Under the pieces are notes generated by a model. The model did not search any database. It was given only the letters and a program-made list of their open reading frames with translations, and was not told where the DNA came from. From Fimbriosthenelais zetlandica (lineage: Eukaryota), in assembly GCA_977030845.1 (NCBI GenBank), contig OZ365112.1, forward strand, positions 17,980,001 to 18,044,000: DNA of 64,000 bases. The letters are read 5' to 3'. Within the stretch, counting starts at the first letter, position 1; each line of letters begins with the position of its first letter. Below, one piece after another: positions 9,471 through 46,314 of the stretch. The translations under genes and the position numbers were made by a program.

Positions 9471-10379
9471 GGGACATAACGTAACAACAATTAGAGATGC
9501 CAACATATTTAATTATACTTCATTAACAACTATTTAACTATTTAACTGTTATATATGAAAATGTTTTCTTATTTTATATTCCTTTATTTATCGCTTCAGC
9601 CCTGATACGGACAGGTGCGACATCTCCTTAAAGGGCCCTTCTTGGCACCCTCCGACTGTCAGTCCAACACTCATAATTTAAGGTAATTCTTGGAATGAAT
9701 TTCATTACCAACCCTTATAGGGAAAATTAAGGAAAGAAAGACTTTTATTAGCGTTTTATCTTCTTTTTGAATGAATGCCCCAGATGTAATTCTGCCAGAA
9801 ATCAATTTGCTAATTCTTATATTTGCATTAATTCCTGATTATCAGCAGAAAATATAATAATGGAGCTCCCAATTCTATCCCATTTTGCCTCGGTCTTCCT
9901 TATTTTTCTTGACTGGCTTAAGATCCTACATCCACCGAATAAGTGCAGGCTTTATCACTGAATACCTATATAATCCTCATTTACAACCAACACAAGCATG
10001 AGCAACATTAACAGTACACGACTTTTTGGCAATATTCTTCATTGAAAGTAAAGCCACGGTTTTTTTTATTGATGGAATAGTGAATGGCATTCCTGCATGA
10101 TATCGTTGCTCGGGGTTGACTTGAATGTAAATCTTGTCACGTGGTCGTAGATGACAATGGTAGGAGATAAATATGCTATAGGCTTCCGTAGGCTCAGCCA
10201 GGGATGATTTATCCCTCACTGCATCCATCAAATAAGAGAATATGGCGGAGATTTATAACCAAGTCAAACCCATAAAAGAGCAGATAAATGCCCGTTATTC
10301 ATGGATTACTTTCAATCCTCCTGGATCTTATGATTACCTGGCAAAACTCGGTTGACCCACGCAAAGGAAGAAATTGGAA

Positions 10380-10900
10380 GTACTGCTGCTCACATATCTT
10401 TAGAACAACTTCCTTATATAAACAGGGGGAAACGGAAGACAATTTATCGAACAATCGTACCGTTTAATGCCTCATATTTACGGGGATGTATGGCCTAACT
10501 TTAAAAGGAAAAAATGATGGAAACCATGAAACGAAAGACAGACCCTCCTTTAGTTCTTCGATTGCCATTCTTTGCCTAATGTCGTGGAATGAATTATGAT
10601 GGTCAGGGCCTCCAGGTGCATGTTAAATTTGCGTGAGAATGTTCATGCTTCACCATCTCTACCCACATGTTCTTCTCTCCTCTAAGTCCTGTTTTCTATT
10701 GATAATCCATATCCGGAGTTGAATCCGGTTAGTTTAAGAAGATCCTGTTCGTGTTTTATTATCAATTGTCGAAAGATTGATATCAATGGAATCAACTTGA
10801 CAAATGTGGCTAAAGAAAAGGTCAGTTTCCAAGAAGCTTGGATCTGTGCTAGAATCAGAGACCCATTCATTTTGAAGTTTGGATTTTTACTGTTGAGAAA
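10380..10900 (+). mobile_element. Decayed non-LTR (LINE, RTE-like) reverse transcriptase fragments
   Basis: KTIYRTIVP..Y (~10440) and KIDINGINLTNV..F[frameshift]KKLGSVLES (~10770-10860, cf. FKYLGS). The order is non-canonical, suggesting two pieces. Confidence 0.35.
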
Positions 10901-12481: not shown

Positions 12482-15400
12482 ATGGATGTCCGGGCTGTTC
12501 TAGCATTTTTGGCTGTTTTGGTTGCCATAGTAACAACAGAATCTACAGGGAAAGGTAAGAGTGGGTGTAGATAATATTAAATTATGTATTGCTGCAATTA
12601 GGACATTGAATGTCGTCATTGTTGAGGATTTACCTTGTATACTCATGTGAAAGCAATGCCTCATACATGATAGCGTATGATGGCCTCCTGTTGAGGAATA
12701 CACCACCATTCACAGTTCCTGTGATGTTCATCTCTTTGTACGCATATGTCTATATGTTGTCTTCTGTGCAACAGATATTTGTGCAAGTGTTCTAGAACAT
12801 AATCAACAACACGCCCCACATCCTGAGCAGAGAGACTTGTAGATGGAACTGCCATTTCATTGTGCCTTCCTCGGGTGGACTATTTGAAACTAGTTATTCA
12901 TAAGACATATATGATTTCCTTACCAACGAGGTCTTATGAATCAAAGTATTGAAGGTTCCCTTGTTTAATTTCAATGGTAAAGAAATGAAAGAGATGGGTC
13001 CATTGAGAGACAGGCCTGTTGTGTACACTTCAAGAACAATTTGTTACGTTTTACAGAAACGAATATAATGAGTCAGTATCTAAATGTTAAAGAAAGTGTC
13101 ATATTTCACATTGCCTGCTCCATTGCCAGTGTTCATATAAAATTTCCCTGGAGAATTTCAACATGTAGCTTGATGTTTTGAATTGGCATCATTATTTCTA
13201 TGATTGATTCTGTTAGAGTCTCAGATACGTATCATATGAAATGGACCGCTCTTGAATGCATAATCTCGGTTGGTCACAGGGCACAGTGTAGCCGTTTTAG
13301 GTCACTCTCATGTAGTAATTTTAACCCACCGGAAGTGGCTTGAAACCAGACAGGGGAGTGTCCATAACCTCGGATGATATAATTCTTGATCGTCCTCTAA
13401 ACCGGAAGTGTCTATAGTGATGCGCATGGCCTAATACAAGTAGGAAGTGTGACTTGAACCTAGGATGTTATCACCCTGAATCTAGGACTAGGGCACTCAA
13501 GAGTATTGCCAACCTAGAATGAGATGACTCTAGTGGGAAAACGGCGGTGATTTGATCCTACTACAACGACACAACTGTCATGGCGAGAAAGATTTATATT
13601 AAAGTCAAAAGCGATAATATTGAAAGAAGAGGTTATGCAGTGCTCGTTAGGTGACGATTGCTCGTCTGGATTCTCTCTCTGGGATCCCAGAAGAAACTCC
13701 TACCTGTGCATGTCACGCTATCAATGCCACGTGATTGAATGAGACATAATCGTGAGACAATGGCGCAGGGTTTGCGCTCTGACTACTTTTATCTGGTGAT
13801 TAGTGTACCGTTTTTTGGCGGTTCCTACTCACTATGGAGAGTAAGAAGGGGGAGGGCACAGTCAAGGAAGGGCTCAGTGTCGAAATAAGTGGAATAGGAA
13901 GAATGAGGAAATCTTAGAGGGTTTGCAGTATAGATTTGCGCCGTCTGTGCACATCTAAGCATTTGGGCCTGATTGCAGATTCTCCATGCAATAGCCATGA
14001 ATGTCCTTTTGTTGTGTAATTGAAAGGCTTCAGATCGAGTTACATTCCTGTCTTGTAAAGAACAGATGAGAAAGGTATTGATCGATGACCAGAAAGGAAG
14101 GTACAATACTAACTTGAAGTATCATCAATTAATCGATCCAAGACCTATATATCCATGACCCTCTCATCTGACTATGTTGCCAATATACCTTTGGACTATG
14201 TTGGTTTGTAATGAGAAGTAATTTGAATTCCCTTAAGGGCACCCAGCCATTGTTGACTTACTGCGCATTATTGACAACATGCCCCTTAATTTTCTCGAAA
14301 TATTGTAAGTTTTGCTGCAAAATAGGAAAGGGCAGGGTAGTACAAATGGATGTCCAAATTGCCTGTAAGGTAAAATGTTGATTTTTCCACTGAATATCGC
14401 ATGGAGCACTCATCCAAGGCTTATGTAATCTACTTCAGTGTAATTCTCTATGGCTGTAGAGCTGTGGTCAACATTGGCTGCCTCAAGTGCTTAATGCCAT
14501 GTGGAGTGTTTGCTTAGGTAGTAGATGTTTCCCCTCCTTTATTCTATGTAAAGTTTTGGCTGGATAACTCTTGACACCGCAATATTTTCATAAAATCATC
14601 TATTGTTTTAAAGATTTTATATTGGAATTATATATTTTTAGAGTGTTTTTAAAAAATGTTTAGAACTCTGTTAACATTTAAAAGCCCTGTGATTTCAATT
14701 AAGTCAATAGTATTGAATTTAGCCATCACCACGAACAGCAAGTCACAGAATTTGTTTCCTTTTCCTATCCCCTGGCATTTCGTTTAGTCCTATATGGGTA
14801 ATTACTGGTGGTTTCTGTGTACCACAACCCCAACTACTGTTTGTCCTCAATCCACACAAAGCCTGGATCCAATACAGAGTAGTATATACCCAGTCGCTAT
14901 CAGTTGGCTGTCGGGCGTGCTATACGGCCCCCGGAAACTAGGGACCTTGTGTCTATCTCACCACCAAATGGGAGGAACATTTCCACCAAGCCATAACACT
15001 GACCATCCCTTGTCTAACACACATCCAGGGGCAGCCACTTAGGAACTAGGTGCTGACAGAAATGCTTCCTCTCCCACTCCTGCCACTCTTGTTTTGCCTA
15101 TACACAGAATTACATTTCTGTTTTGGAGCGATACTATTGGTAAATTTGTCCACTCAGCAATTTGCCTCCAGCCACATTGGATAAAAGGAACTTGAGGAAA
15201 GTCCCCATAATGATTCTTCATGTAAAGCCATGAGGCTAGGTTTCGACCCGACAGCCTTTCCCCTAAAGGGAATTACTCCCAAATCTTGAATGTGGAACTT
15301 AATTTATTTGCCCATTTCTGCTAATGTCAATTCATTAAACCAAAGGATTGTATTGGCCTACTCCATTATTTTAATTCTAATGCATTCCAAGTTTAGCAGA

Positions 15401-18400
15401 TCTTCCCCTTTTTGCCATAATGTATTATGGTAATCTTTCATTCAGCTGAAATAAAGCTCATCTTTAATACGACCACCTTTGAGACAAAAGTGGTCTATGG
15501 GGGAAGCGGCCGATTCAGGGGTATTTTTAAGAAGGGAATTTTGACCGGAAACAAATATGGTCATGAGCCATGTCTTTCTAGGGCATTGGTCGCCTGAGAG
15601 GGGTGGTCGGATTGCGGGAGCATTGTCTTTCCTCAGGATAGTTTTTGTTCAGGATTAGCGTCATTTCAGACTTCGATCCCACATTATCGGTGGACAGTTG
15701 AAACGTGGATCGTCCTTGGATGTTAAGGTACACTGGGGTGTTGTTCAAGAGTTCCTTTGTTATCTCCATACACTCGCATGTGTCTTGGGAATGCATGGAA
15801 CTGAGCTCAGATCATGAAACAAGAGGAACTGCACACGTAGCTTCTGGTGGCGATAAAAATACAGTGGGTATGCCAGTCTCCAATTATTGGCTTTATGATG
15901 TTGAGTGCAGGGGGACCCGTACGTGGTTCTGAAGGTAGAGTTTGTTACTGGGAGAGGGATATATGATATCTATTCTGCCAGGAGAGCGGACGGAACATTG
16001 TGTCCTTCAAGATGATATGATGATTGTGCCTTATAGGACAAAGCTTTGTAACGAGTTGATTTACTTTGTTGACCGCTAATCACGTCTAACATCTATATTC
16101 ATTATAGACATATATGATAGCCATATCGTTTCTATAGTTGCCATGATAAGATTTGTATTGTTGTAAGGCTTGTTGTCAGTTATTTTTCTACAGGTACATT
16201 TTTTACATTTCCTTGGTAAAGCTGAGATGAGAAGTTGAGTAGGCCTATACAACTACAGTATACAACACAATAATCATGGTTTCTAAATACATTATAAACA
16301 CAGAGTATTACATTACAATGACTAGCATATTTTTAGCTGACATATGTTTCTTCTTAAATAAATATTGTATATGTGACATTCACTTTTCACCCTTTTCCAA
16401 AGAAGGACATACTTCGTGGATTGCAGGAAACTAAGATGTAGCTTGACATTTGACTGGGACCTGTTTTGCCAGGATAGAAAGTGGAGGCTGACGTACAGGT
16501 CTTGGATTAGGCCTGTTATATCCACCGATATGATACCCTCTCCTGCTGACCTTTGGTGGTATTGAGGACCTATTATATTGGCCTCTGCTCTCTCCTTCCT
16601 CTCAGTAGGAAACAGTTGGCGAGTCGAGAGCTACAGTAAAAACCATCTGCCCTGAAGCTGTGCCAGAAAATGCATGAGTAAATTAATGCCAGTTATAAGA
16701 TCTTATAGGAGAAGAAGCTGTGAGTGAGGGTATAGGTGGGGTTAAATAGGTTGTTGCGAAGCCTTAATTATGGGTTTTGTCCCCGTTTTTGCTCCTTGTA
16801 TAAGCCTTGTCTTTGCTACTTTCCTATACTCAACGTCTATTAACTCTTGCAAGTTAGAACCCTGCTTAATTTGTATAGGAAAAACCGATATTATCCCGAG
16901 AACATTGCCTATTAGTTAATCGGGCCTCTTGGGAATATTTATGATGTTGTAAGGGGCCGTGAACCGCAGGGGCCATATAGTGTGGGCCCCTTATAACACT
17001 ATATAGTCTAGAACACCCAAAACCCTATAATTATGATAAAATTAACATATATAAATAAACTATTTTGGGTCTAAGTCTAAATCTATCCTGGAAAAGCTCT
17101 TGTATTCTGCGTGGAATATATATCAGGGAAGGCCTTACTTCCATTGGGTGGATGGAGGGAGATTTATTGCGTTTTTAGTAACATGTTTTTAACTCTGTAT
17201 AGAAGGCTTTAATTTAGATATTACTTGATAAATGCACCCCATAAACTCTCAGCAGTGGGTCTTTAAAAGGATAATCAAGAATTATCATTATTAGGCCTTC
17301 CGGGCATGAACATTGTACGGTTGTTTTAGCAAAACAGCGGGAAGTCTCAAAAAAACATCCAGGATCCGCCTCTGCCATGTGAGGCTCTGCAAATTCAGCG
17401 TGACAGGAAAATTGCTAGATTTATGTTTCACTCTTGATGGGTTCAAGAGAGACACTTTGTATTAAAGGAGATCAAAGGGAGGATTTCCCTTCTAGAGGGG
17501 GCGAGTGTTTTTGAGCCGTATATATCCGTTGGGTGTGTCAAACTAAAACAAATAATTGTCCACCATTACCATGCCAAGATTGTTAGTTAATTAAAAGCTA
17601 GTTTGAATCATCTAATTACCATCCACTTGAGTAATAGCAGCTTTAACAGTTATTAATTTAGTCAGCATGATAATTCCTATAAATTATAGCAATAATTAAT
17701 TTTGGTTCATATAGTGTTGACATGCGAACCTCGTGCTTAAATGGCTCCCAATTTTACCTCTCATATCAAATTATTATTTGCATGTATTATGTCATATGGT
17801 TGTTATAATACATTCTTTTTGCCCTTTGTTGTTAGACTGCCCCAATGTGGACCTTCTTCATTACCACCACTGCCTGATATTTTACCTTTTAATTAAGGAT
17901 TTCCATAGATTTGATCCTTTCCTATAAGGAAACATAAAAAGTTTGATATATCGAAACTGTTGTCATGGAAACGTCTTGAATTATCCACAACTGACAGAGA
18001 CATTGTTTGGCAATGGTTGCCCCAGTCTTTGCCCCAAACAAATCACTGAAGACAAGAGGAAGTCTTAATGTTTGATAGACCGGATATAGTTTCACTAAGT
18101 GGCACATTTCTTGCGGGCAATGCCTTTTGGTGTCTTGGTTATAATCAGCTGCATGGGCGTTTGTTCATGGCGTCATTCTGTGGTTCCATCCCACCCTCTA
18201 ACATGCATTCTACCGGCCTAAGTTGGCAGATCTGGATTTGACTATAATGAAGGAAAGGGTGCACTGCTGCCATTTGAAGCGCGTGGGAAATGTTATTAGC
18301 CAATTCCGGCACGATTACGGACACAATAAGAACTAATGATGAAGGTAGAAGAGTGACAATGCAACTCTGAATTACAAGGGCCTTTTATGCTCCCATCGCG

Positions 18401-33798: not shown

Positions 33799-36700
33799 TT
33801 AGGCCTCGCTCGCATCCACCTTAATTGTCATGCTCTCCCCGGCAAACTCTGTAGGTGCCGTGGATTTGGAAGTTGTCTTGAAACTTGCAGTCATGTAATG
33901 AATTGAGTCGTTCTTCTTGTCCTTCCTTTGTCTTCTCAATTCCCGCCTGTCCTTCCTATTTCTCTCCTTTTCTTCTTGTTTTAGTCTTGCTTCCTCCTCC
34001 CTTCTTTTGGCTTCCCGCCTTTTCTCTTTTCTGGCTTCCCTTCTCTCCTCTTTTTCCTTCTTGCTTCTCTTGGATCTCTTTGGGTCATCCACTTCCTTTG
34101 CTGGTTCATCTTTGAGAGGAAGGTCTCGTATTGCTGTAGTCCTGACCACGCTGGTATAAAGATCATCATAGGAGTACACCGAGTCCTGTCTAACAGTGGC
34201 CACCCGATAATCTGGATACAATATTAACATTTCATTAGAATCTCCCAACTTCTTGTCATCAATTGCAATGAGAACTTTTTTATAGTCATCTAAATGCTAT
34301 CACTGTTGCTGAGGGGGTACATGTAGTAGGGATAGACCTATTTCTTTCCGACACTTGGAATAGTTTAGTGACTGGTATCTAGCTATGTAGATATTAGTAT
34401 GCCTACCTCGGTTATGAACTGGCACCTCATATTCCCTGCTGCCTACGTTATGTGCTGATGTTTCTGAGTCTAATGCAGCTGTGGTAAGTGAAGATATTTT
34501 TAGTTAGAACCCATGTTAGTATATGTACATGGTTATACATTCAGGTCTACATCAAAACAGACATCAAGGTCTGGGGTCTATGTGTTATAGCTGTTAGTAT
34601 AATTGTTTGTGAGAATACTTTACTGAGTGAAATTTAAAGTAAGGTAACTTACTTGTGCTAGTTGTTGGGCTTTCTGTTTCTCCGTAGAAGGGACGATAGG
34701 CGTTAACATCTTTGATGTCAGTAGGGTGAATGTTCCTTCTCTTCCTGCCAGTCAAATACAACATGGTTGTTAGAAAACTCAACATACCTTAACAAACACA
34801 GCCTTGGGTGGCCAAGTGATATATCTACTATAAAGCTAGTATATATGCCCACCAATCCAAATTGTCTTTATAAAGAAATGTTTGGATTGTGAGAACTGAC
34901 ACATTGCCGCCCTATTCAACTAAAAAAACTGAACTTACTTATCATGATTGTGACACCAACAGCATATACCGATGAAAATAATAACCACCAGAACAAAAAC
35001 GGTACAGACGACAATTACAACTGAAAAGAAAACAAATTAATCCTTATTCATTTGTTAATTGATCCGTATTTTGTTCACACATGTTCTGATTACCTTTGAT
35101 GATATATATTTGATATTTTGAGGTATTGACAAAAAATCTCACCTATTCTAAACACATCCAGTTGGCCGTCTGCAGTGGAGGCCCCAGAGCTAGGTTCTAC
35201 CGAGGTTTGCTGTACCTCAGAGTCTGCCGTGGTTGTTGCTGCTGTTATTGTGGCCGTTGTAGCTACACTCCCATTTGCAGCTTGCGTATCTGTTACATTG
35301 TCTGCAATACATATCATTATGATGCCATTTAATCAAGGTTTTAAACTCATATAGACCCTTTTTAAAATGACTAGTATTAGTTACGAAGTAGTCTCAACCA
35401 CCATACAAGAAAGCTAAGCCGATTTGGGGAAGAATATAATCTGAAATTACAAACCATTGGCAGTTGTAGCCTCGATATTTCTTGGAATAGTTTGTGGTTC
35501 TGTATTCTGTGCTGAAACATTTAACAAAGCATTCAATTATTTCTTAATCTGCGTCCATTTGAGATTGCTCAGTTGAATATATTTTTTTTTTTATCAGATA
35601 TCACTCTTAAATATTCTTAATTTTACCCGAACTGCCAGCGAAACTTATAAAACCTATAAATAAAGGTCTCTGATAATTTATTCATTGATTCTTTTAAAAG
35701 ATATTTACCTATATAGCAGACATATGGTAGCTGTTGGTTGCAGTCATAGTCGTTCCATCCATAACGTTCTTGAGGGTTGGATTCAATAATCAAACACGAT
35801 TTCAGGTTTGACTGAGGTGCCGCAGACATAAATGATGTGTAAATGAATTCTTGGCCTGGAAATCATACCAAATGTTTAGTTTTATATAATGTTATATAAT
35901 TGGGCTAAGTTATACTAGCTAATGCAACTAAAGATAGTTATCACTTACCATCTAGCCATTTCCACAGCCGACCCACTAGCCCCATCCAGTATGGCGCCCT
36001 CGCTTGGATTTGATCCAGAATTGTCTTCAATTTATTAAAAGTGTCTGCTGAATCGATGGAGAGCAGGTCTCCAGACATGGCTCTACAGGTTTCCCTTGCT
36101 TTGAACCAGGTCTTCGTTAGCAGATTTTCTATATACACGCAGTGTGTATTTACCATGTAGTGGCTATTCCTATTCAGGGTACAGAAAATTGTTGCTGAAA
36201 AAAAAATGATAAATAGTCTTATTTCCCAATTGTGATTAGTTCTTATTTCTCACAATTTTCTATAATACTCTTGGCCATTGACTGGATTTACTCATTCTTT
36301 GTTCTGAATGAATTAGTTTGCTTCTAACGTGATTTATGAGAAGACTACTATACTTACGGACTTTACAGATGTAGTTCATTTTATCATGGCATGCTTTATC
36401 TCCCATCTTCCACATCCTCTCATTCCTATCCTCAAATATCTCAATGTTACCACATGACTGGTAGTCGTTAAAATCATTTGGTTGGTCATAGCCCCAATCC
36501 ACAAAGGCTCCTGGATCAGCACGAAGGGAAACATTGTTAATTTTTGTTCAGGTGTATAGTAAACGACTTTTAATTGGAAAATTGAAACTTGCGGGCAAGA
36601 TCTGCTGATTTCTGATAATATTTATAATAATATTACTAAATATTATTTATACGTACCACCAATCTTGTAAATAGTATTTTTGCTGGTTCCCCCACAATAT

Positions 36701-38888
36701 TGATTGATATCACCAAGACATGATCTAGTACAGCCGGAGGTTGATCCGTACACCCCATATGTGTCACCACAGCTGCAGTTAGTCCCTGCCTGTATTGAAA
36801 AAAATATTTTATAAAACCTAAAAAAAAGGTCTGTGATATCATGTTCTACGATTCAATGACTTGTAGCATCGTATTACGTTATATTTATTGCATCGATGGG
36901 AAAGTATGGCGAAATTGTTTTGAATGCCTTTATTACATAATCATATTCCGTACCTTGAGGGCAAAATACTTGTATTGGTCACTGGCAGTGGAGCAGTGGT
37001 CGGAACATTTCGCTGGCTCTATGAGAGGCATTAGAACACTGTTTGTGAATTCAGGATACGCCTGGCTTTCCATGAAACATCCTTGCAGATCCACTTCTTG
37101 TAAACCTGTGAAATTACATATGGAGGAATATTAATCAATTAATACTGAACAAAATTTTGTATGCATAATAACGAACTCATCATTAATTAATTCTACTCAA
37201 AGTTGAGGGAATGTACATACCATCTAGCCATCTCCAGTTGTTAAATCTGTTCCCTCCGAACTTGACACTTTCCTCATATCCACCAATAAACACCCTGTCC
37301 AGCATGTCTCTGTCAGTGGGGGTAGTTTTGGTTTTGACCAGATCTTTGATCATATTGAGGACTATATTGTTTGATGGCTGCTCTGGTAGTGAGGCGAGGT
37401 GGCCATGGCCAGGGTAACTCATGTTAATGGCCATATTTACACAGTCAGCCTCAGCAGCCTCCCAGGTCTTGGGCGTCTCTTTTAGGATGTAGCATCCATT
37501 GGGTGTTCTCACACCTTCACAGACTGGTTCTGCCAAAAATAACAAATAGCAAATTATGAATACATCAAAATTTTCCAAAGTGATGAAAGTCCGGAATCTT
37601 AAAATAAAGCAATGGATTACCTTTTGATATAGGCTGGGTATATTCTGATGGTTGAAGGCAGAAGGTGTTAAAGATTCGTTCAATAACATGAAAGCTGTCA
37701 AAGGCTGAGAAGTCAGGAAGCAGCCAGTAGGTGGTATTTTCCAGCCTGGGAGCAGATGAGATGTCTCTCACTTCTTTCTTGTCCACTTGGCGGGTGATTC
37801 CCACTGAGTACATCCTTATGTCTGCTTCCTCTGCCCTCCTAGCCTCTAATGTTGTCTTCTGTGTATCCCTGGTAGACTTCCCATCACTAATTACTATGCC
37901 AACATTAGACACCTCAGGCCTGTCCTCTGCTGTAGAAAACACCTCGGTCCTCATGACCTTTATGCCTCCGGAGGTATTCGTATTCTCATCTTTGATGGAA
38001 ACAGCTGAAATGGCCGCACTTAAAGAGATGTGGCTAGTGTACTTGGAGAGACCAAATTCCCTGGTTCCCTCATTTCCGAACTGGACAAAAGCAACACGGT
38101 CCTGGTCAGGACCTATGTTGAGGTAGTTGGTAATGCCTTTGATGAAGTTCTGGATTGACTTCCAGTTGGCGCAGTTCGATATAGTACTGTTTCTACAGAT
38201 ACTACCACTACCATCCACGACAAAAGTCAGATCAATCTTCTCCCTGGCACAAACTGGTAAAATATAATAGATCATATTATACATTAACCTCTGCCAAATT
38301 CAAATGATTTATTGATACTTTTAGACTAAGTCACAGAATAAGTTTTTAATCTATGTAACTGGGGGAAATCGAGTTTCATTAGGAGTCATTAGGCAAATAT
38401 TTCTTAATTGATCAGCAAGAGAACTTACCGCCTGTGCAAGCAGCGCACCCTATAATGAAATGAGAAAAATAACCAATAAATAATCGAAAAACAATCAATG
38501 TAATTCATACATGTAACAGATTTACTTTGATACAAATCTATTCCCTTCAGAGGGAAAGTTACGGGCACAATGTTTGTCAAGCAGTCATATTATATAGTAT
38601 TTAATATATAAATTTTGAAAAGGTGGGTCTTAAATATTTTGTCACTTAGAATATAAGATATAATATGATCATTATTCCGCTAGTTAGCTATATTGATCGC
38701 TACTATAATACCCAATGGTTTCCAAGTAGTTACATAAGCCGTGTATTTGTATCAATGCTCTTGCCCGAACATAACAACCTCCATGTAGACATGGAGTATG
38801 GAATAAATAACTACTCACCACAATCAGCGACATTAGTTAAATATCCCACTAATAGTACTGATAAAACGAAAATCCTGGTAAGATCCAT
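33799..38888 (-). CDS. Type-I membrane receptor A: signal-vWA-CTLD1(WSC inserted)-CTLD2-S/T stalk-TM-cytoplasmic tail, ~919 aa, 14 exons
   Basis: complement join 38888-38819, 38449-38429, 38253-37621 (vWA, DGSGS MIDAS), 37529-37221 (CTLD1 N-half ending WRWLDG), 37105-36954 and 36789-36657 (WSC), 36510-36358 (CTLD1 C-half DWGYDQPND..SC..MGDKAC..YIC), 36194-35949 and 35855-35709 (CTLD2), 35301-35143 (stalk), 35020-34939 (TM), 34744-34653, 34478-34407, 34289-33799. All GT-AG; phases consistent; 2760 nt. Confidence 0.88.
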
Positions 38889-40583: not shown

Positions 40584-43500
40584 TCAGTTAGAGGCGTCTA
40601 CTGGACTCAGTTCCCTGTAGCGATGTTTCCCCTCATATCCACTTGATCTCTTCTTGTTCTTTTTTGACTTCTTGCTCCGTTTCTCTCGATGCTCATCCTC
40701 AAGTCGTGCTGGTAGTAAAAGGAAATATATTCTTTTAGTCGAAATTGATTTACTTGTACTTGTACTTGTACTTGTAGTGATGCAGCACATGGGTCATGGA
40801 AAAATATCCCAGGTTATTACTTTAAACTCAGAATTGTGGGATTGGTATGATGGCTGTGGTATGAATTTTTAAAGGAACATGTAATCAGATCATGTAAATT
40901 GTTAAAATTGACTTTTCTCTTGATTTAGATTTTTCTTGAGTAATCATCTTATTATCTTTGGTGACCCACTTACAGTTATAGTGTGAGTCTTCTGTGTCCA
41001 TGCTTAGATGGCGGTTTCGGTTAGGTGTGCCTGGTCCTTTACCTGAAAATGATAGTACATGTATTAGTAGAACAAACATAATGGAATGAATTTTAATGCA
41101 CTATTAACTCAGTTGTATTGCATAAAAAGTTTCCCATGAAGAACTCACGTCTGTTGGTGTTGTATTGATCAATTGGTATCTCCCTCGATGCAAGTTGGGA
41201 TGCGCTTAGGATTTGTTCTGGAAACAATTACAAAATGGATGGATTATTCTGAAAGAGTTTGGGGGTAAGAGTTATATCGAGTTCGAATTACTTATTTCTG
41301 ATAACAGCTTTGGACATTGACATATTTTCGGTCAGTTTTAAAACTTACCTCCAGAGCTTGGCCTATAGCTGTCATTGTCATAGTCATGGTCCTCCTTCAG
41401 GTAGTTACTATGGCCATAGTTACCATAGTAGTCCCCAAATGGTATGAACACCTGGTTACGTAAATCAGTGACGCCCTTTGGATTTATAGTATTCTTCGTC
41501 TTTCTGGTAAAATAAAATAGAAATTTACCACTATCATAATCATGTTATAGACGACAGAAATATGTTTCCCTTTTTAAGACGAAGGAAGAAAATTATAGCA
41601 AAATTCGTTTCATTACAAAATGGAGACAACAATTGTGTATAAACCTTTAACTCACCCTTTGCATACGTCAGTGCAGCAACATAAGACCACAAAGATGATT
41701 ATTACAATCACCACCAGAGAAACCAGTATAGCGATGACCACTGGAAATAAAGGCAAATATCTTAATAGGGAGGAATCATCATTTTTTTCCGTATTCTAAA
41801 ATTCCAAATCGCAAAATTTTAGACGATGCAGGCGGTACTGATTAGAATATGAACTATTCATTTTACCTATAGCCAGTGTGGTCAGTTGGTTGCCATCTTG
41901 GGTGGAGGCCCCGATGTTAGGATCAACACCCCCAGTGCCTCCAGACTGTGACTGTGTCCCCGCTTGTGTGGTCCCTGAATTTGAACTCGTGGAAGTAGTG
42001 GCCACCGTGGATGATTTACTCGGTTCTGGAGTCAGTCCCGCTCCCGCTCCCGCTCCCGCTCCCGCTCCTGCTCCTGCTGATAAAAATATGTTCATATGAG
42101 ATATATCTCAACATTTTAGGATCATGTATATACACATAGTTGTCTAATATCACAAGTACATTATATCCAAAGCTCAAAATCTCAAGGCTAAGTGTTAGTT
42201 ATTATGGAGGAATTATGCTAGAAGATCTTAGGGCCACTTTTGCCCAGGATAAGTTAAATAGAAGTTAGTACAAAAAAACTGGGGATCAACAAACTTGTAG
42301 TTGACGGCACGACAGTATGAGGCTCCGGGATTCTCTCTGGATAGTTGAATACAAATGAGAGTCAGGGAAGAAGTAGTAAAGGTATTTCACCAAACATATT
42401 AGGACACAAGATAGCCATCATGAAAGTCACTGCAAGTCACTAAATTTAAATCCACCAATGACACAAAATGTCAGTTAATTAATGTTTGTCCTTTGCAGTC
42501 ACTTACCCATAATGCAAACAGAAGGATATTTGCGAGCACAGTTTTCATCAGTCCACCAATAGTTTCCCTGATAATTGTACGTATAGACAATACAGTTTGC
42601 ATTGTCCTGGTTTGGTTCTACAGGGTCCCAGTTTGTGTACAGAATTGGGGTTCCTGAAACAAGGTGTTAAAATGGAATGTTAGGAATAGATACCTAATGC
42701 TAAATATGAAATATGCCCACCCTGTTTCGACTAATTTCCAGAGACCCATAGAACCTCAGTCACTTACCAATCTTCCAGTCCCATAATCTACCAACTAAGC
42801 CGATCCATATTGCCGTACTTTTCAGTTGGAACAATATAAGTTTTTGCTGTACTTGAAGGAACATTTGCTCTGAGGTTACAGACACAAGATCACCAACCAT
42901 CCCTATACACGCTTCTCTGGCTCTGAACCAGTTTTTGGCGAGATCAATGCCATAGAATAGACATTTGCCATCTGCCATTTGGTACTTGTAATTATTTGCT
43001 TGACAGTTAGGATTATCAGATGCTGAAAGATAATAATGGATGATTTCATTTTATTTTGATGTCATCCAGAAGTGATTATAACACATGTACATGTATACAT
43101 TTAAATTGATGATGATTACAGGATTTGACAATTTTCTATTTGTTGAATACTCACAGAGTTGGCAGATATAATAGTATTCTGCAAAACATGGTTCATCTCC
43201 CATTTTCCAGTCATGTCTGCTCTCTAGAACACCACAACTTTGGTAATTCTCAAAATTATTTGGCTGCAAATGTCCCCAGTTGCTGTAGGCTGCATCTGTA
43301 GGTCAGAAACCCAGATGAATGATGTGGCACAAATGATATGGATTAGCAACCTCAAAAATAATTCTAGTGAGGAAAATGTCAGAAAAACATTTTCAAATTT
43401 CCAAAAACATTTTCAAAGGTGAATATTATTACCTTTGACTTTGTAAATAAAATTTCTGTAACTGCCTCCACAGAATTCCCGGGGACGAGAATTGTCGAAT

Positions 43501-44883
43501 ACGCTACCAGAACATTGAGTGCTACATCCACTTGACACACCATAGCTTCCATAGGTATCATCACAGTAACAATAGCGCCCTCCCTAACATAACATCGAAA
43601 CAGCCAAATATAAATATAATTATTACATCTTCATCATTTTAAAATCTTATTATCTGTTGAAAATAAGAACTTGTATTGAAATATATATGTACCTGAAGGC
43701 CTGCATATGTATATCTATTACCCCTACAGTAGTCCGTACAGTTAGAGATCCACATGGGTTCCATGGTGCCTCTGTCACTGTTAGAGAAATCCTGGAAGGT
43801 GTAAAGCGATATCATATCTCTATTCCCTGGCACGGTATTATCAGCAAAACATCCTTGACCAAACAGCTCCACCAAACCTGTAAAAACACAATATATGATA
43901 TCATTAATATTATGAAAATTTCATCCTTATTATTTCTGTGCAAAATGCATAGGTTTTGACTCACCCTCAAGCCATCTCCATACAGGGTAATCTGTTTTTC
44001 CCCGCAGCGCGCTCTCCTCATATCCACCCATCCATAACCACTTGAGTTGCTCCCTCTCAGCATCACTCGGTTTAGTCTCGTAGTAAGTGAGTAGTAGAGA
44101 GTTGAGCTCGTCATCTCGATCCTTGGTCATTGGCATGACTAGCTGACCTGATAATCCTGATCTCCTCCCTTCCTCTTCACACGCTAACTCAGCCGCATCT
44201 CTCGACAAGGGGTCCATGTTAATCACATATATTCCATACGACCCTTGCAGCCTTATCAGTTGGGCTAGGAGTAAATGACAATATATTATAATAGATATAA
44301 TTATGCGTTTCAACATGCCAGTGAAAAATAACAGTAACACAACTGGGCTAAAATAAAGGTTAAAAGCGGACATATGCCGCCCTTTATTGTATTTCCCTCA
44401 CAATTGATGCAGTATGCATTTTGAAATTTCAATATCCATCTTGATTACATGATGTATATATTTTCATTTTTGTTTTTCATACCCCTTACAACCCAGCAAT
44501 TACTGCCTGTACAAGCTGTTACAAGCGCTCTCATATTGGACTTAACCCTTTAAACCGTTATGTAATCAGCCTTTCAGCAGTACTTAGTGTATAGCTCAGG
44601 TAATATGTGGAATATGTACACGCGTAGAACAGCCAATTGATCAACATTCATACTGCATTTCATTCTGTTTAAGATTCACTACACTAATTATAATAACAAG
44701 TATACACTTCATATGTTTAAAATGCTATATTATGTCCTTCGAGCAATGGCATGTTAATAGGAATGTAATGTCCTGTATAAAATACAAATATAATGAAATT
44801 ATAATCTTACCTTCATAGTGAGGTGATAATAATACCAAAATAAATGCGAAATTGACCAATATCCTCTTGGTTAAAGTCTCCAT
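40584..44883 (-). CDS. Type-I membrane receptor B (paralog of A): signal-CTLD1(WSC inserted)-CTLD2-stalk-TM-tail, ~662 aa, 14 exons
   Basis: complement join 44883-44811, 44527-44504, 44264-43965 (CTLD1 N-half ending WRWLE), 43877-43693 and 43583-43433 (WSC: GCFAD...CTDYC..YTYAGLQGGRYCYC...C.TQC.G...FCGG), 43295-43155 (NWGHLQPNN..SC..MGDEPC..YIC), 43022-42768 and 42653-42507 (CTLD2 with EPN), 42076-41867, 41740-41656 (TM), 41503-41349, 41217-41149, 41042-40974, 40708-40584. Phases consistent; 1989 nt. Confidence 0.88.
42036..42077 (-). repeat. Coding hexanucleotide repeat (GCRGGA)7 encoding (Ala-Gly)7
   Basis: tcccgc x5 plus tcctgc x2 on the + strand at the start of the receptor B stalk exon. 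Confidence 0.9.
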
Positions 44884-46314
44884 GTTTGGTGAACTGTAAT
44901 CTAATGTCGCCTCTCGTCCTCGGCCTGCATCACTCCCCATTGCCTGAACCTTTCTGTTGACCCCTTGTTGCTATTTTCTCAGTGGCTAGCCTGTCCTTGG
45001 CGTTCATTGGTTGAGACTTGTTTCCTTCAGGTATACAGTTATTGGATTAAGGGTTAATACCTCCCGGTGTGGATTAGTGGACAGGAGGAATAAAGCTCCT
45101 GTGGTGGCTGGTCACCTGACCAAAAATCACACTGACCACTGCAGGTGTATTATAGGCACTTAAAGTGCAGCTTTCTTCATCTTATATTAACCTTGAATGT
45201 TCCTTAAATTCGAATGCTTGAAGTGTGATAAAAAAAGTTAAAGGTAGGGTGTCAACCCCGTGAAAGTGGCATGGCGGGGGAGGGGGTGGGGGTGACAAAA
45301 ACATTTCTGAAAGCTGTGAACATGTATACTGTGGAGGTGTATTCATCTAGAGTTTCTGTAAATGTTACATAATTATTTATTTTATTTGAACGGAAGTGTT
45401 GCAAAATCAGGGGGTTTCTGACCCAACCCATATTTCAACTTGACCCTTACCATCCACAGAGGTCAGAAGTTACATAATATGACTTTAATATAAGCACATA
45501 TGACTACTACAATAATGTCCCTGAGAATAATGACTGTAAGTAGAGGGAATCAAGCTTGGCAAGAAGAAATTGGTCAAAATCATTGCTAGCTAAGCGCTAC
45601 CACTAACATCCAGATAGAAACTTTTGGCATGGGTTCAATTGAACTGACCCAGTATACTTCTTTTTCATGATTTCAGGGTCTAGAATTAGAGTAATATGAG
45701 ATCAAATGAGATAAAAGGTTGAATTCCTTCTTATTCTTTTTGATACTATTCCCTGAAATTGGTACATGCATATGTTATCTATGTGGTAGATTTAAACATA
45801 CTGCCGTCTATAGATGACTATGTGAGGTATTATATGGTGCAGTGGGTGGTATGTAATCGGTACAGAGAGATTATATGTCATATGTGTGACTCGTCTCCCC
45901 CTCGAGCTACTCATCTTCTGATGGTTGAGTATATCACTGGGTTAGAACCGGATCAGGCAGCTGGGCGTCAATAACCACTCTGTTCACAGATCTTCTCTAC
46001 AAAGGTCCGTATTATAACCATTTTAAGTTGCCCCTCCTTCATCCTTTTTTGTCTCCTTTCCGTATTTATAAACCTGTTCAATGGGCGTCCCTTTCGATAG
46101 AAATTCTTAGAATTTCCCAATATACTTTTATTCTCTTGAAAACATGTAAATACACATTATTTATTTCTGGTGGTACTTTTTACATTGTTTCCAAAGTTCC
46201 CCTGCATGTGGTATTTGAACTTTTTACCTTTGACAAACGTAATACATTGTATTGTGTCATATCAAACCAAATACATGTTTTATTAAGCTTGGGAACATTT
46301 TTCAGGCCTGGAAC

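Follow-up and report, generated by a model that had tools for sequence, protein, structure and literature searches.

The window analysed here comprises 64,000 nucleotides (nt) of the Fimbriosthenelais zetlandica genome (contig OZ365112.1, positions 17,980,001 to 18,044,000), and positions without a further label refer to it. Gene B, located on the minus strand of the window, encodes a C-type lectin-like domain (CTLD) into which a WSC domain, a PAN/Apple-like sugar-binding module, is inserted, and the same nested layout is present in the neighbouring gene A and in two gene copies of a second species. The nested module apparently represents a conserved gene family and a new, so far undescribed arrangement of known domains. 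In the explanation that we favour, with a probability of roughly 0.85, gene B is predicted to encode an intact type I membrane receptor, and its module would go back to a single exon-shuffling event in which a WSC cassette entered a pre-existing phase-1 intron of a CTLD. This insertion would have preceded the tandem duplication that separated A and B as well as the divergence from at least one further species, and selection at the protein level would since have kept the nesting.

Organization of the nested module in gene B

The exon borders of the module were located by reading the minus strand of positions 42600-45000. Its four exons (e1 to e4) all lie within 43155-44264 (-) and are bordered by AG acceptors following pyrimidine tracts and by GT donors. 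The front half of the CTLD is encoded by e1 (43965..44264, 300 nt). It is followed by e2 (43693..43877, 185 nt, phase 1 to 0), which covers the first half of the WSC domain with Cys1 and the C-x3-C helix, and by e3 (43433..43583, 151 nt, phase 0 to 1), which provides the second half with C-x-C, C-x3-C and the CGG motif. The back half of the CTLD is encoded by e4 (43155..43295, 141 nt). The first exon of the module is entered in phase 1, and the four introns that follow e1, e2, e3 and e4 have the phases 1, 0, 1 and 1, respectively. At the entry into the insert the sequence reads WRWLE-G/LVEL..., and at the return to the CTLD it reads ...YKVK-D/AAYSNWGHLQPNN. The spliced product of e1 to e4 is open, without stops or frameshifts. 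An earlier note on this DNA had described gene B as WRWLE followed by two WSC exons in phases 1-0-1 and the back half of a CTLD, and this layout was found exactly at 43155-44264 (-) with canonical borders.

Pfam scans were run exon by exon and not on the spliced domain. The WSC profile (PF01822) matches e2 at positions 13-45 with 20.6 bits (E = 5e-4) and e3 at positions 47-82 with 15.3 bits. Taken singly, e2 and e3 stay below the Pfam cut-off in both A and B; the two matches in gene B are complementary and in order, and the rough sum of the separate pieces amounts to 35.9 bits compared with a cut-off of 27.8. The last exon of the module matches the C-type lectin-like profile (PF00059, Lectin_C) at positions 68-106 with 24.0 bits, the cut-off being 22.6. 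Gene A and L005 (see below) likewise yield two complementary WSC halves and a match of e4 to the C-terminal part of Lectin_C. A profile built from e1 and its relatives was compared with the PDB and retrieved CTLDs first, namely echicetin (E = 0.0015) followed by DEC-205, type II antifreeze protein and CLEC4A. As a lead only, Lectin_C is found in 87 of the 100 Atlas clusters that resemble e1. The PDB search with e3 alone returned only noise.

The cysteines of both domains are retained. Gene B, gene A and the related gene of the second species (L005, see below) all have the eight WSC cysteines (C, C-x3-C, C-x-C, C-x3-C, C) in alignment, together with the CGG motif. In gene B the spacing in front of CGG is x13 rather than x7, which adds six residues between Cys7 and Cys8. 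The four core cysteines of the CTLD are kept as well, Cys1 in e1 and Cys2-4 in e4, and are predicted to form the disulfides Cys1-Cys4 and Cys2-Cys3. By profile matches and cysteine pattern, the module of gene B belongs to both the WSC (PF01822) and the C-type lectin-like (PF00059) families. In total, 12 cysteine columns (8 WSC and 4 CTLD core) are common to A and B, in agreement with the earlier claim that cysteines and reading frames of gene B are intact. Only the optional N-terminal cysteine pair is missing: it is present in A, and both partners are gone from B and from P0001, the closest relative of B. Judged from the sequences, this paired loss looks like orderly evolution and not like decay.

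The interrupted CTLDs share a further peculiarity. In all three host domains (43965-44264, 37221-37529 and L005:10086-10394) the motif W-[IML]-G-G replaces WIGL and is immediately followed by an invariant G-Y-E-E-S, which ordinary CTLDs do not have.

Insertion site and origin of the cassette

The WSC exons were removed in silico, and the resulting CTLDs were aligned with the second, uninterrupted CTLDs of A and B. All four CTLD introns (in the first and second CTLD of each gene) fall into the same column, the codon following W-x-W-x-x, and share phase 1. The Pfam coordinates agree, since the exons of the second CTLDs break at Lectin_C 57/68 and e4 also starts at position 68. Because the uninterrupted CTLDs share column and phase, the cassette would occupy an intron that the host already possessed. 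Vertebrate CTLD genes, too, are known to have an intron downstream of WIGL (PMC514892). In A, B, L005 and the second copy of L005, the WSC exon pair forms a symmetric phase 1-1 cassette, as expected for exon shuffling. Skipping of the pair joins e1 to e4 in frame to give WRWLE-D-AAYSNW, which was checked in A and B and is implied by the phases in L005, and the skipped products of A and B align over their full length with the second CTLDs.

The insert interrupts the first CTLD by about 110 residues between W-x-W-x-x-G and x-x-Y-x-N-W. This site presumably lies in the long-loop region of the CTLD, about ten residues before QPN. The CTLD would still close across the insert through the Cys1-Cys4 disulfide. 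Structurally, the WSC fold is characterized by a β1-β5-β3-β4-β2 topology with four disulfides and the CGG motif (PMC9024836). With its first and last strands adjacent, the module could hang from a single loop about ten residues in front of QPN. In such an arrangement, the glycan-binding surfaces of CTLD host and WSC guest would be combined or lie next to each other on a cell-surface receptor for recognition or adhesion.

Gene A, located about 2 kb downstream of gene B on the same strand, allows the age of the insertion to be assessed. Since gene A has its own signal exon, A and B are tandem paralogues, i.e. separate genes and not repeats within one gene. Its module (36358..37529, -) consists of e1 37529-37221, e2 37105-36954, e3 36789-36657 and e4 36510-36358 and shows the same phases as in B (1, 1, 0, 1 and 1). 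The two modules are 36% identical overall, with 26% in e1, 35% in e2 and 49% in both e3 and e4, in line with the low identity stated before. Exon lengths differ among A, B and L005 by 3 to 33 nt, always by multiples of 3. Insertion site, phases and the two-exon WSC domain are common to A, B and L005, and because of this a single insertion before the duplication is far more economical than repeated ones. Together with the phase-1 intron of the second CTLDs, these shared features bear out the earlier proposal that the insertion predates the A/B duplication.

Relatives in other species

A phmmer search with e1 of gene B against 1.84 billion representatives retrieved only three exon-sized open reading frames (ORFs; P0001 to P0003) and no annotated full-length protein. 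Searches for homologous proteins with e1 and with e2 of gene B yielded nothing, and neither did a scan of JGI metagenomes with the e1 profile.

The closest relative of gene B, P0001, is 60% identical to e1 and resides on 2.6-kb Logan contigs (L001/L002). Upstream of this B-like e1, L001 carries an exon homologous to exon 1 of gene B, i.e. a B-like signal exon. The contigs end 1.1 kb past e1, and on that stretch no WSC exon scored above shuffled controls; a stretch of L001/L002 that resembles the beginning of e2 contains a stop codon and was judged to be due to chance. P0002 and P0003, found in two different ENA assemblies, are 46% and 36% identical to e1 of gene B, respectively.

The complete module was found through P0004, a cluster mate of P0002, which led to locus L005 on a 2.9-Mb contig. 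Here e1 to e4 are located at 10086-10394, 13685-13836, 14705-14837 and 15339-15482 (309, 152, 133 and 144 nt), with AG/GT borders and phases as in gene B, and a second CTLD follows the four-exon module. Of the WSC halves of L005, e2 scores 35.6 bits, which is above the cut-off of 27.8 by itself, and e3 26.9 bits. The module is 51% identical to that of B and 36% identical to that of A. All three keep CGG and the 12 cysteine columns. The greater similarity to B is consistent with L005 being a B-type orthologue and with A and B having duplicated before the species diverged. No A-like gene was found in the 11 kb that lie downstream of L005.

A second copy is present in the same species on contig ctg37582 (L003, L004 and L007), which aligns collinearly with L005 and is about 90-95% identical to it. 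All four exons of this copy are open and their splice sites are intact. On first impression L003/L004 appeared to lack the WSC exons, but a 16-kb insertion in intron 1 explains the gap, and the exons are present in L007. The layout is therefore found four times (A, B, L005 and its second copy) in two genomes, which speaks for a gene family, as proposed in the earlier note, and not for a one-off accident or a mis-assembly.

Several features of the surrounding DNA were observed in this species. Most of the 16-kb insertion relative to L005 is made up by a Ty3/gypsy-type long terminal repeat retrotransposon (L004:6332-16449, equivalent to L007:1-8215) in intron 1 of the second copy, which encodes a 1352-residue pol with reverse transcriptase, RNase H and integrase and a 654-residue PEG10-like gag. 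In L005, a 60-bp unit is repeated 8.7 times directly upstream of WSC exon e2 (L005:13161-13690); the last repeat copy supplies the splice acceptor and the first bases of e2, and most of the other copies have CAA in place of the CAG of the acceptor. Upstream of e1, L003:8116-8517 contains a long microsatellite of the TGTATGTA type, which translates as VCMY repeats.

Selection on the module

The earlier note had proposed purifying selection and a comparison of nonsynonymous and synonymous substitution rates (dN/dS) per domain between A and B. This comparison is saturated: the proportion of synonymous differences (pS) ranges from 0.72 to 0.89 in the pairs of A, B and L005 (about 0.75-0.80 for A and B), so that no dN/dS ratio can be derived. 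The proportion of nonsynonymous differences (pN) is 0.30-0.45 in these pairs, well below the saturated pS, and in every pair the WSC exons have a lower value than the CTLD exons (0.37 and 0.45 between A and B).

Owing to the saturation between A and B, the two nearly identical copies of the L005 species were compared instead. Of 12 coding differences, 10 are synonymous and two, both in the WSC domain, are nonsynonymous. Over all four exons this corresponds to a pS of 0.060, a pN of 0.0035 and a pN/pS of 0.06 (P = 1.5e-5 against neutrality). For the WSC exons the values are 0.061, 0.0091 and 0.15 (P = 0.029), and for the CTLD exons 0.059, 0 and 0 (P = 1.3e-4). Intron divergence (0.053-0.058) matches pS, and synonymous sites accordingly behave as neutral. 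Purifying selection as such was therefore upheld by the copies of the second species, at a pN/pS of 0.06 (WSC 0.15), and not by the ratio between A and B.

Evaluation of alternative explanations

A few observations weigh against an intact nested receptor that is maintained by selection. By itself, e1 of gene B is a weak CTLD match and finds no Pfam family, and in public protein collections no full-length annotated member of the family was found. The canonical calcium- and sugar-binding residues (EPN or QPD, plus WND) are absent from the first CTLD, which has QPN and MGD in both B and A. The domain would belong to the fold family, but classical calcium-dependent sugar binding is not assured and lectin activity is uncertain. 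Moreover, the count of 10 to 2 differences is small, and the two copies compared may be haplotypes and not separate genes; the direction of selection, as far as the substitutions tell, is clearly purifying despite these small numbers.

It appears rather unlikely, though it would fit the favoured explanation and only add isoforms, that the WSC pair is an optional cassette and that the gene makes nested and plain CTLDs side by side, or mostly plain ones. Such a use would be permitted by the in-frame skipping of the phase 1-1 pair (by direct check in A and B, by phases in L005) and by the alignment of the skipped products along the whole length of the second CTLDs. However, the eight cysteines and CGG are kept, pN among A, B and L005 is not higher in the WSC than in the CTLD exons, pN/pS of the WSC exons is 0.15, and the splice sites are without exception canonical and have good pyrimidine tracts. 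This conservation indicates that translation of the WSC exons is frequent enough for selection to act on them. Very improbable is the idea that these exons are a separate small gene or pseudo-exons within a CTLD intron, the nesting being an artefact of joined open frames. Apart from the scores of e2 and e3, each of which is under the Pfam cut-off in A and B, the evidence opposes it: neither exon has a start codon or signal peptide of its own, in all four genes or copies, which come from two species, they are in phase with the CTLD exons on either side even though lengths differ by multiples of 3, stops are lacking and the exons are under purifying selection. We give slightly less credit still to an independent gain of the WSC inserts in A and B by convergent insertion or gene conversion. 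Nothing specific argues for it, and the higher A-B identity of e3 (49%) relative to e1 (26%) could in principle reflect later exchange, but e4 is as conserved as e3, so that the gradient follows domain constraint and not a conversion tract. Furthermore, the site, the position of the split codon, the phase-0 intron at WSC 45/47 and the gene order are shared by A, B and L005. A single insertion into the host intron before the duplication remains the preferred explanation.

Comparison with known systems

To our knowledge, mobile extracellular modules are almost always arranged end to end, and a module within a module that is kept through duplication and speciation is uncommon. In integrins, the alpha I (VWA) domain is nested in a β-propeller, where a complete module with ends close together sits in a loop. 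Host and guest belong to other families than in gene B, where the exons still display the shuffling, the host intron being occupied by a symmetric phase 1-1 cassette.

WSC and C-type lectin domains are combined in a single metazoan ectodomain in polycystin-1 and the sea-urchin REJ proteins (PMC1934368, PMC9672506). There, the two domains stand side by side in a very large protein with 11 transmembrane segments, whereas gene B places WSC inside the CTLD of a small single-pass receptor, and the comparison covers the common domain families. In the literature searched, WSC and CTLD were encountered together only in this side-by-side form, and no paper on the nested arrangement was found.

The eight-cysteine WSC pattern with CGG, as defined by the structures of Wsc1 and Kremen1 (PMC9024836), is common to gene B, yeast Wsc1 and vertebrate Kremen1/2 (7PZ2, 5FWS). 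Wsc1 moreover resembles gene B in having a cysteine-rich head, a Ser/Thr-rich stalk, one transmembrane helix and a short tail (PMC9024836). In contrast to the free-standing WSC domains of Wsc1 and Kremen, that of gene B is a guest in a lectin fold and is six residues longer between Cys7 and Cys8. With invertebrate multi-CTLD receptors and canonical CTLDs, gene B has in common the four core cysteines, a WIGL-like motif, W-x-W and Q/E-P-N. It deviates from them by the split of the first CTLD by WSC, by W-[IML]-G-G and by MGD in place of WND, whereas its second CTLD is ordinary and has EPN.

It is possible, if tentative, that the module acts as a composite glycan-recognition unit in which WSC shapes or gates the CTLD site, giving a family of lophotrochozoan pattern-recognition or adhesion receptors a specificity of its own. 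If so, it would be a rare case in which exon shuffling into the interior of a domain is still on record in a living gene family. The module also provides a clean natural test case of a disulfide-rich fold tolerating a guest of 110 residues beside its binding site. Automatic domain annotation tends to report such receptors as CTLD fragments plus WSC. Their origin is still recorded in the gene structure: the intron holding the phase 1-1 cassette is also present in the sister CTLD.

Overall structure of genes B and A

The model of gene B comprises 11 exons on the minus strand and 608 residues, with no internal stop and with canonical splice sites throughout. Its parts follow in the order signal peptide, WSC-interrupted CTLD, second ordinary CTLD, mucin-like stalk, transmembrane helix and a tail that is first Tyr/Asp-rich and then basic. 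Exon 1 (44811..44883) contains the start codon and the signal peptide METLTKRILVNFAFILVLLSPHYE, ends in phase 1 with a GT donor and joins the next exon in frame. Downstream of the module, the second CTLD is encoded by two exons, 42768..43022, which covers Lectin_C positions 3-57 and ends with WDWKI-G in phase 1, and 42507..42653, which covers positions 68-105 and contains TPILYTNW, EPN and WTD. The exon model continues with the stalk exon (41867..42076), the transmembrane exon VVIAILVSLVVIVIIIFVVLCCC (41656..41740), the Tyr/Asp-rich cytoplasmic exon (41349..41503) and the last exon with the basic tail and the stop codon (40584..40708). The 3' end is the least certain part of the model, the last splice having been picked by frame and by likeness to the basic tail of A alone.

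Between the last two exons of gene B, two further open stretches with AG/GT borders were noted (41148-41218 and 40975-41043, -). They are out of frame if joined in series and may be alternative or non-coding exons. The stalk exon (41867-42076, -) opens with (GA)6, encoded by a perfect (GCx-GGA) repeat, and the sequence behind it is rich in Ser, Thr and Gly. By its composition, the stalk is likely an O-glycosylated spacer and a site of variable length.

In gene A, the signal exon is followed by an extra VWA exon, and the parts then follow in the order seen in B. The VWA exon (about 38260-37601, -) precedes the four-exon module, and the second CTLD (36194-35949 and 35855-35709, -) follows it. 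Lying between signal peptide and nested CTLD, the VWA exon has no counterpart in B. Its nearest Atlas clusters are mostly molluscan, which serves as a lead only. On the P0003 contig, a VWA ORF is located just upstream of the e1-like exon, and the VWA-bearing form may be conserved as well.

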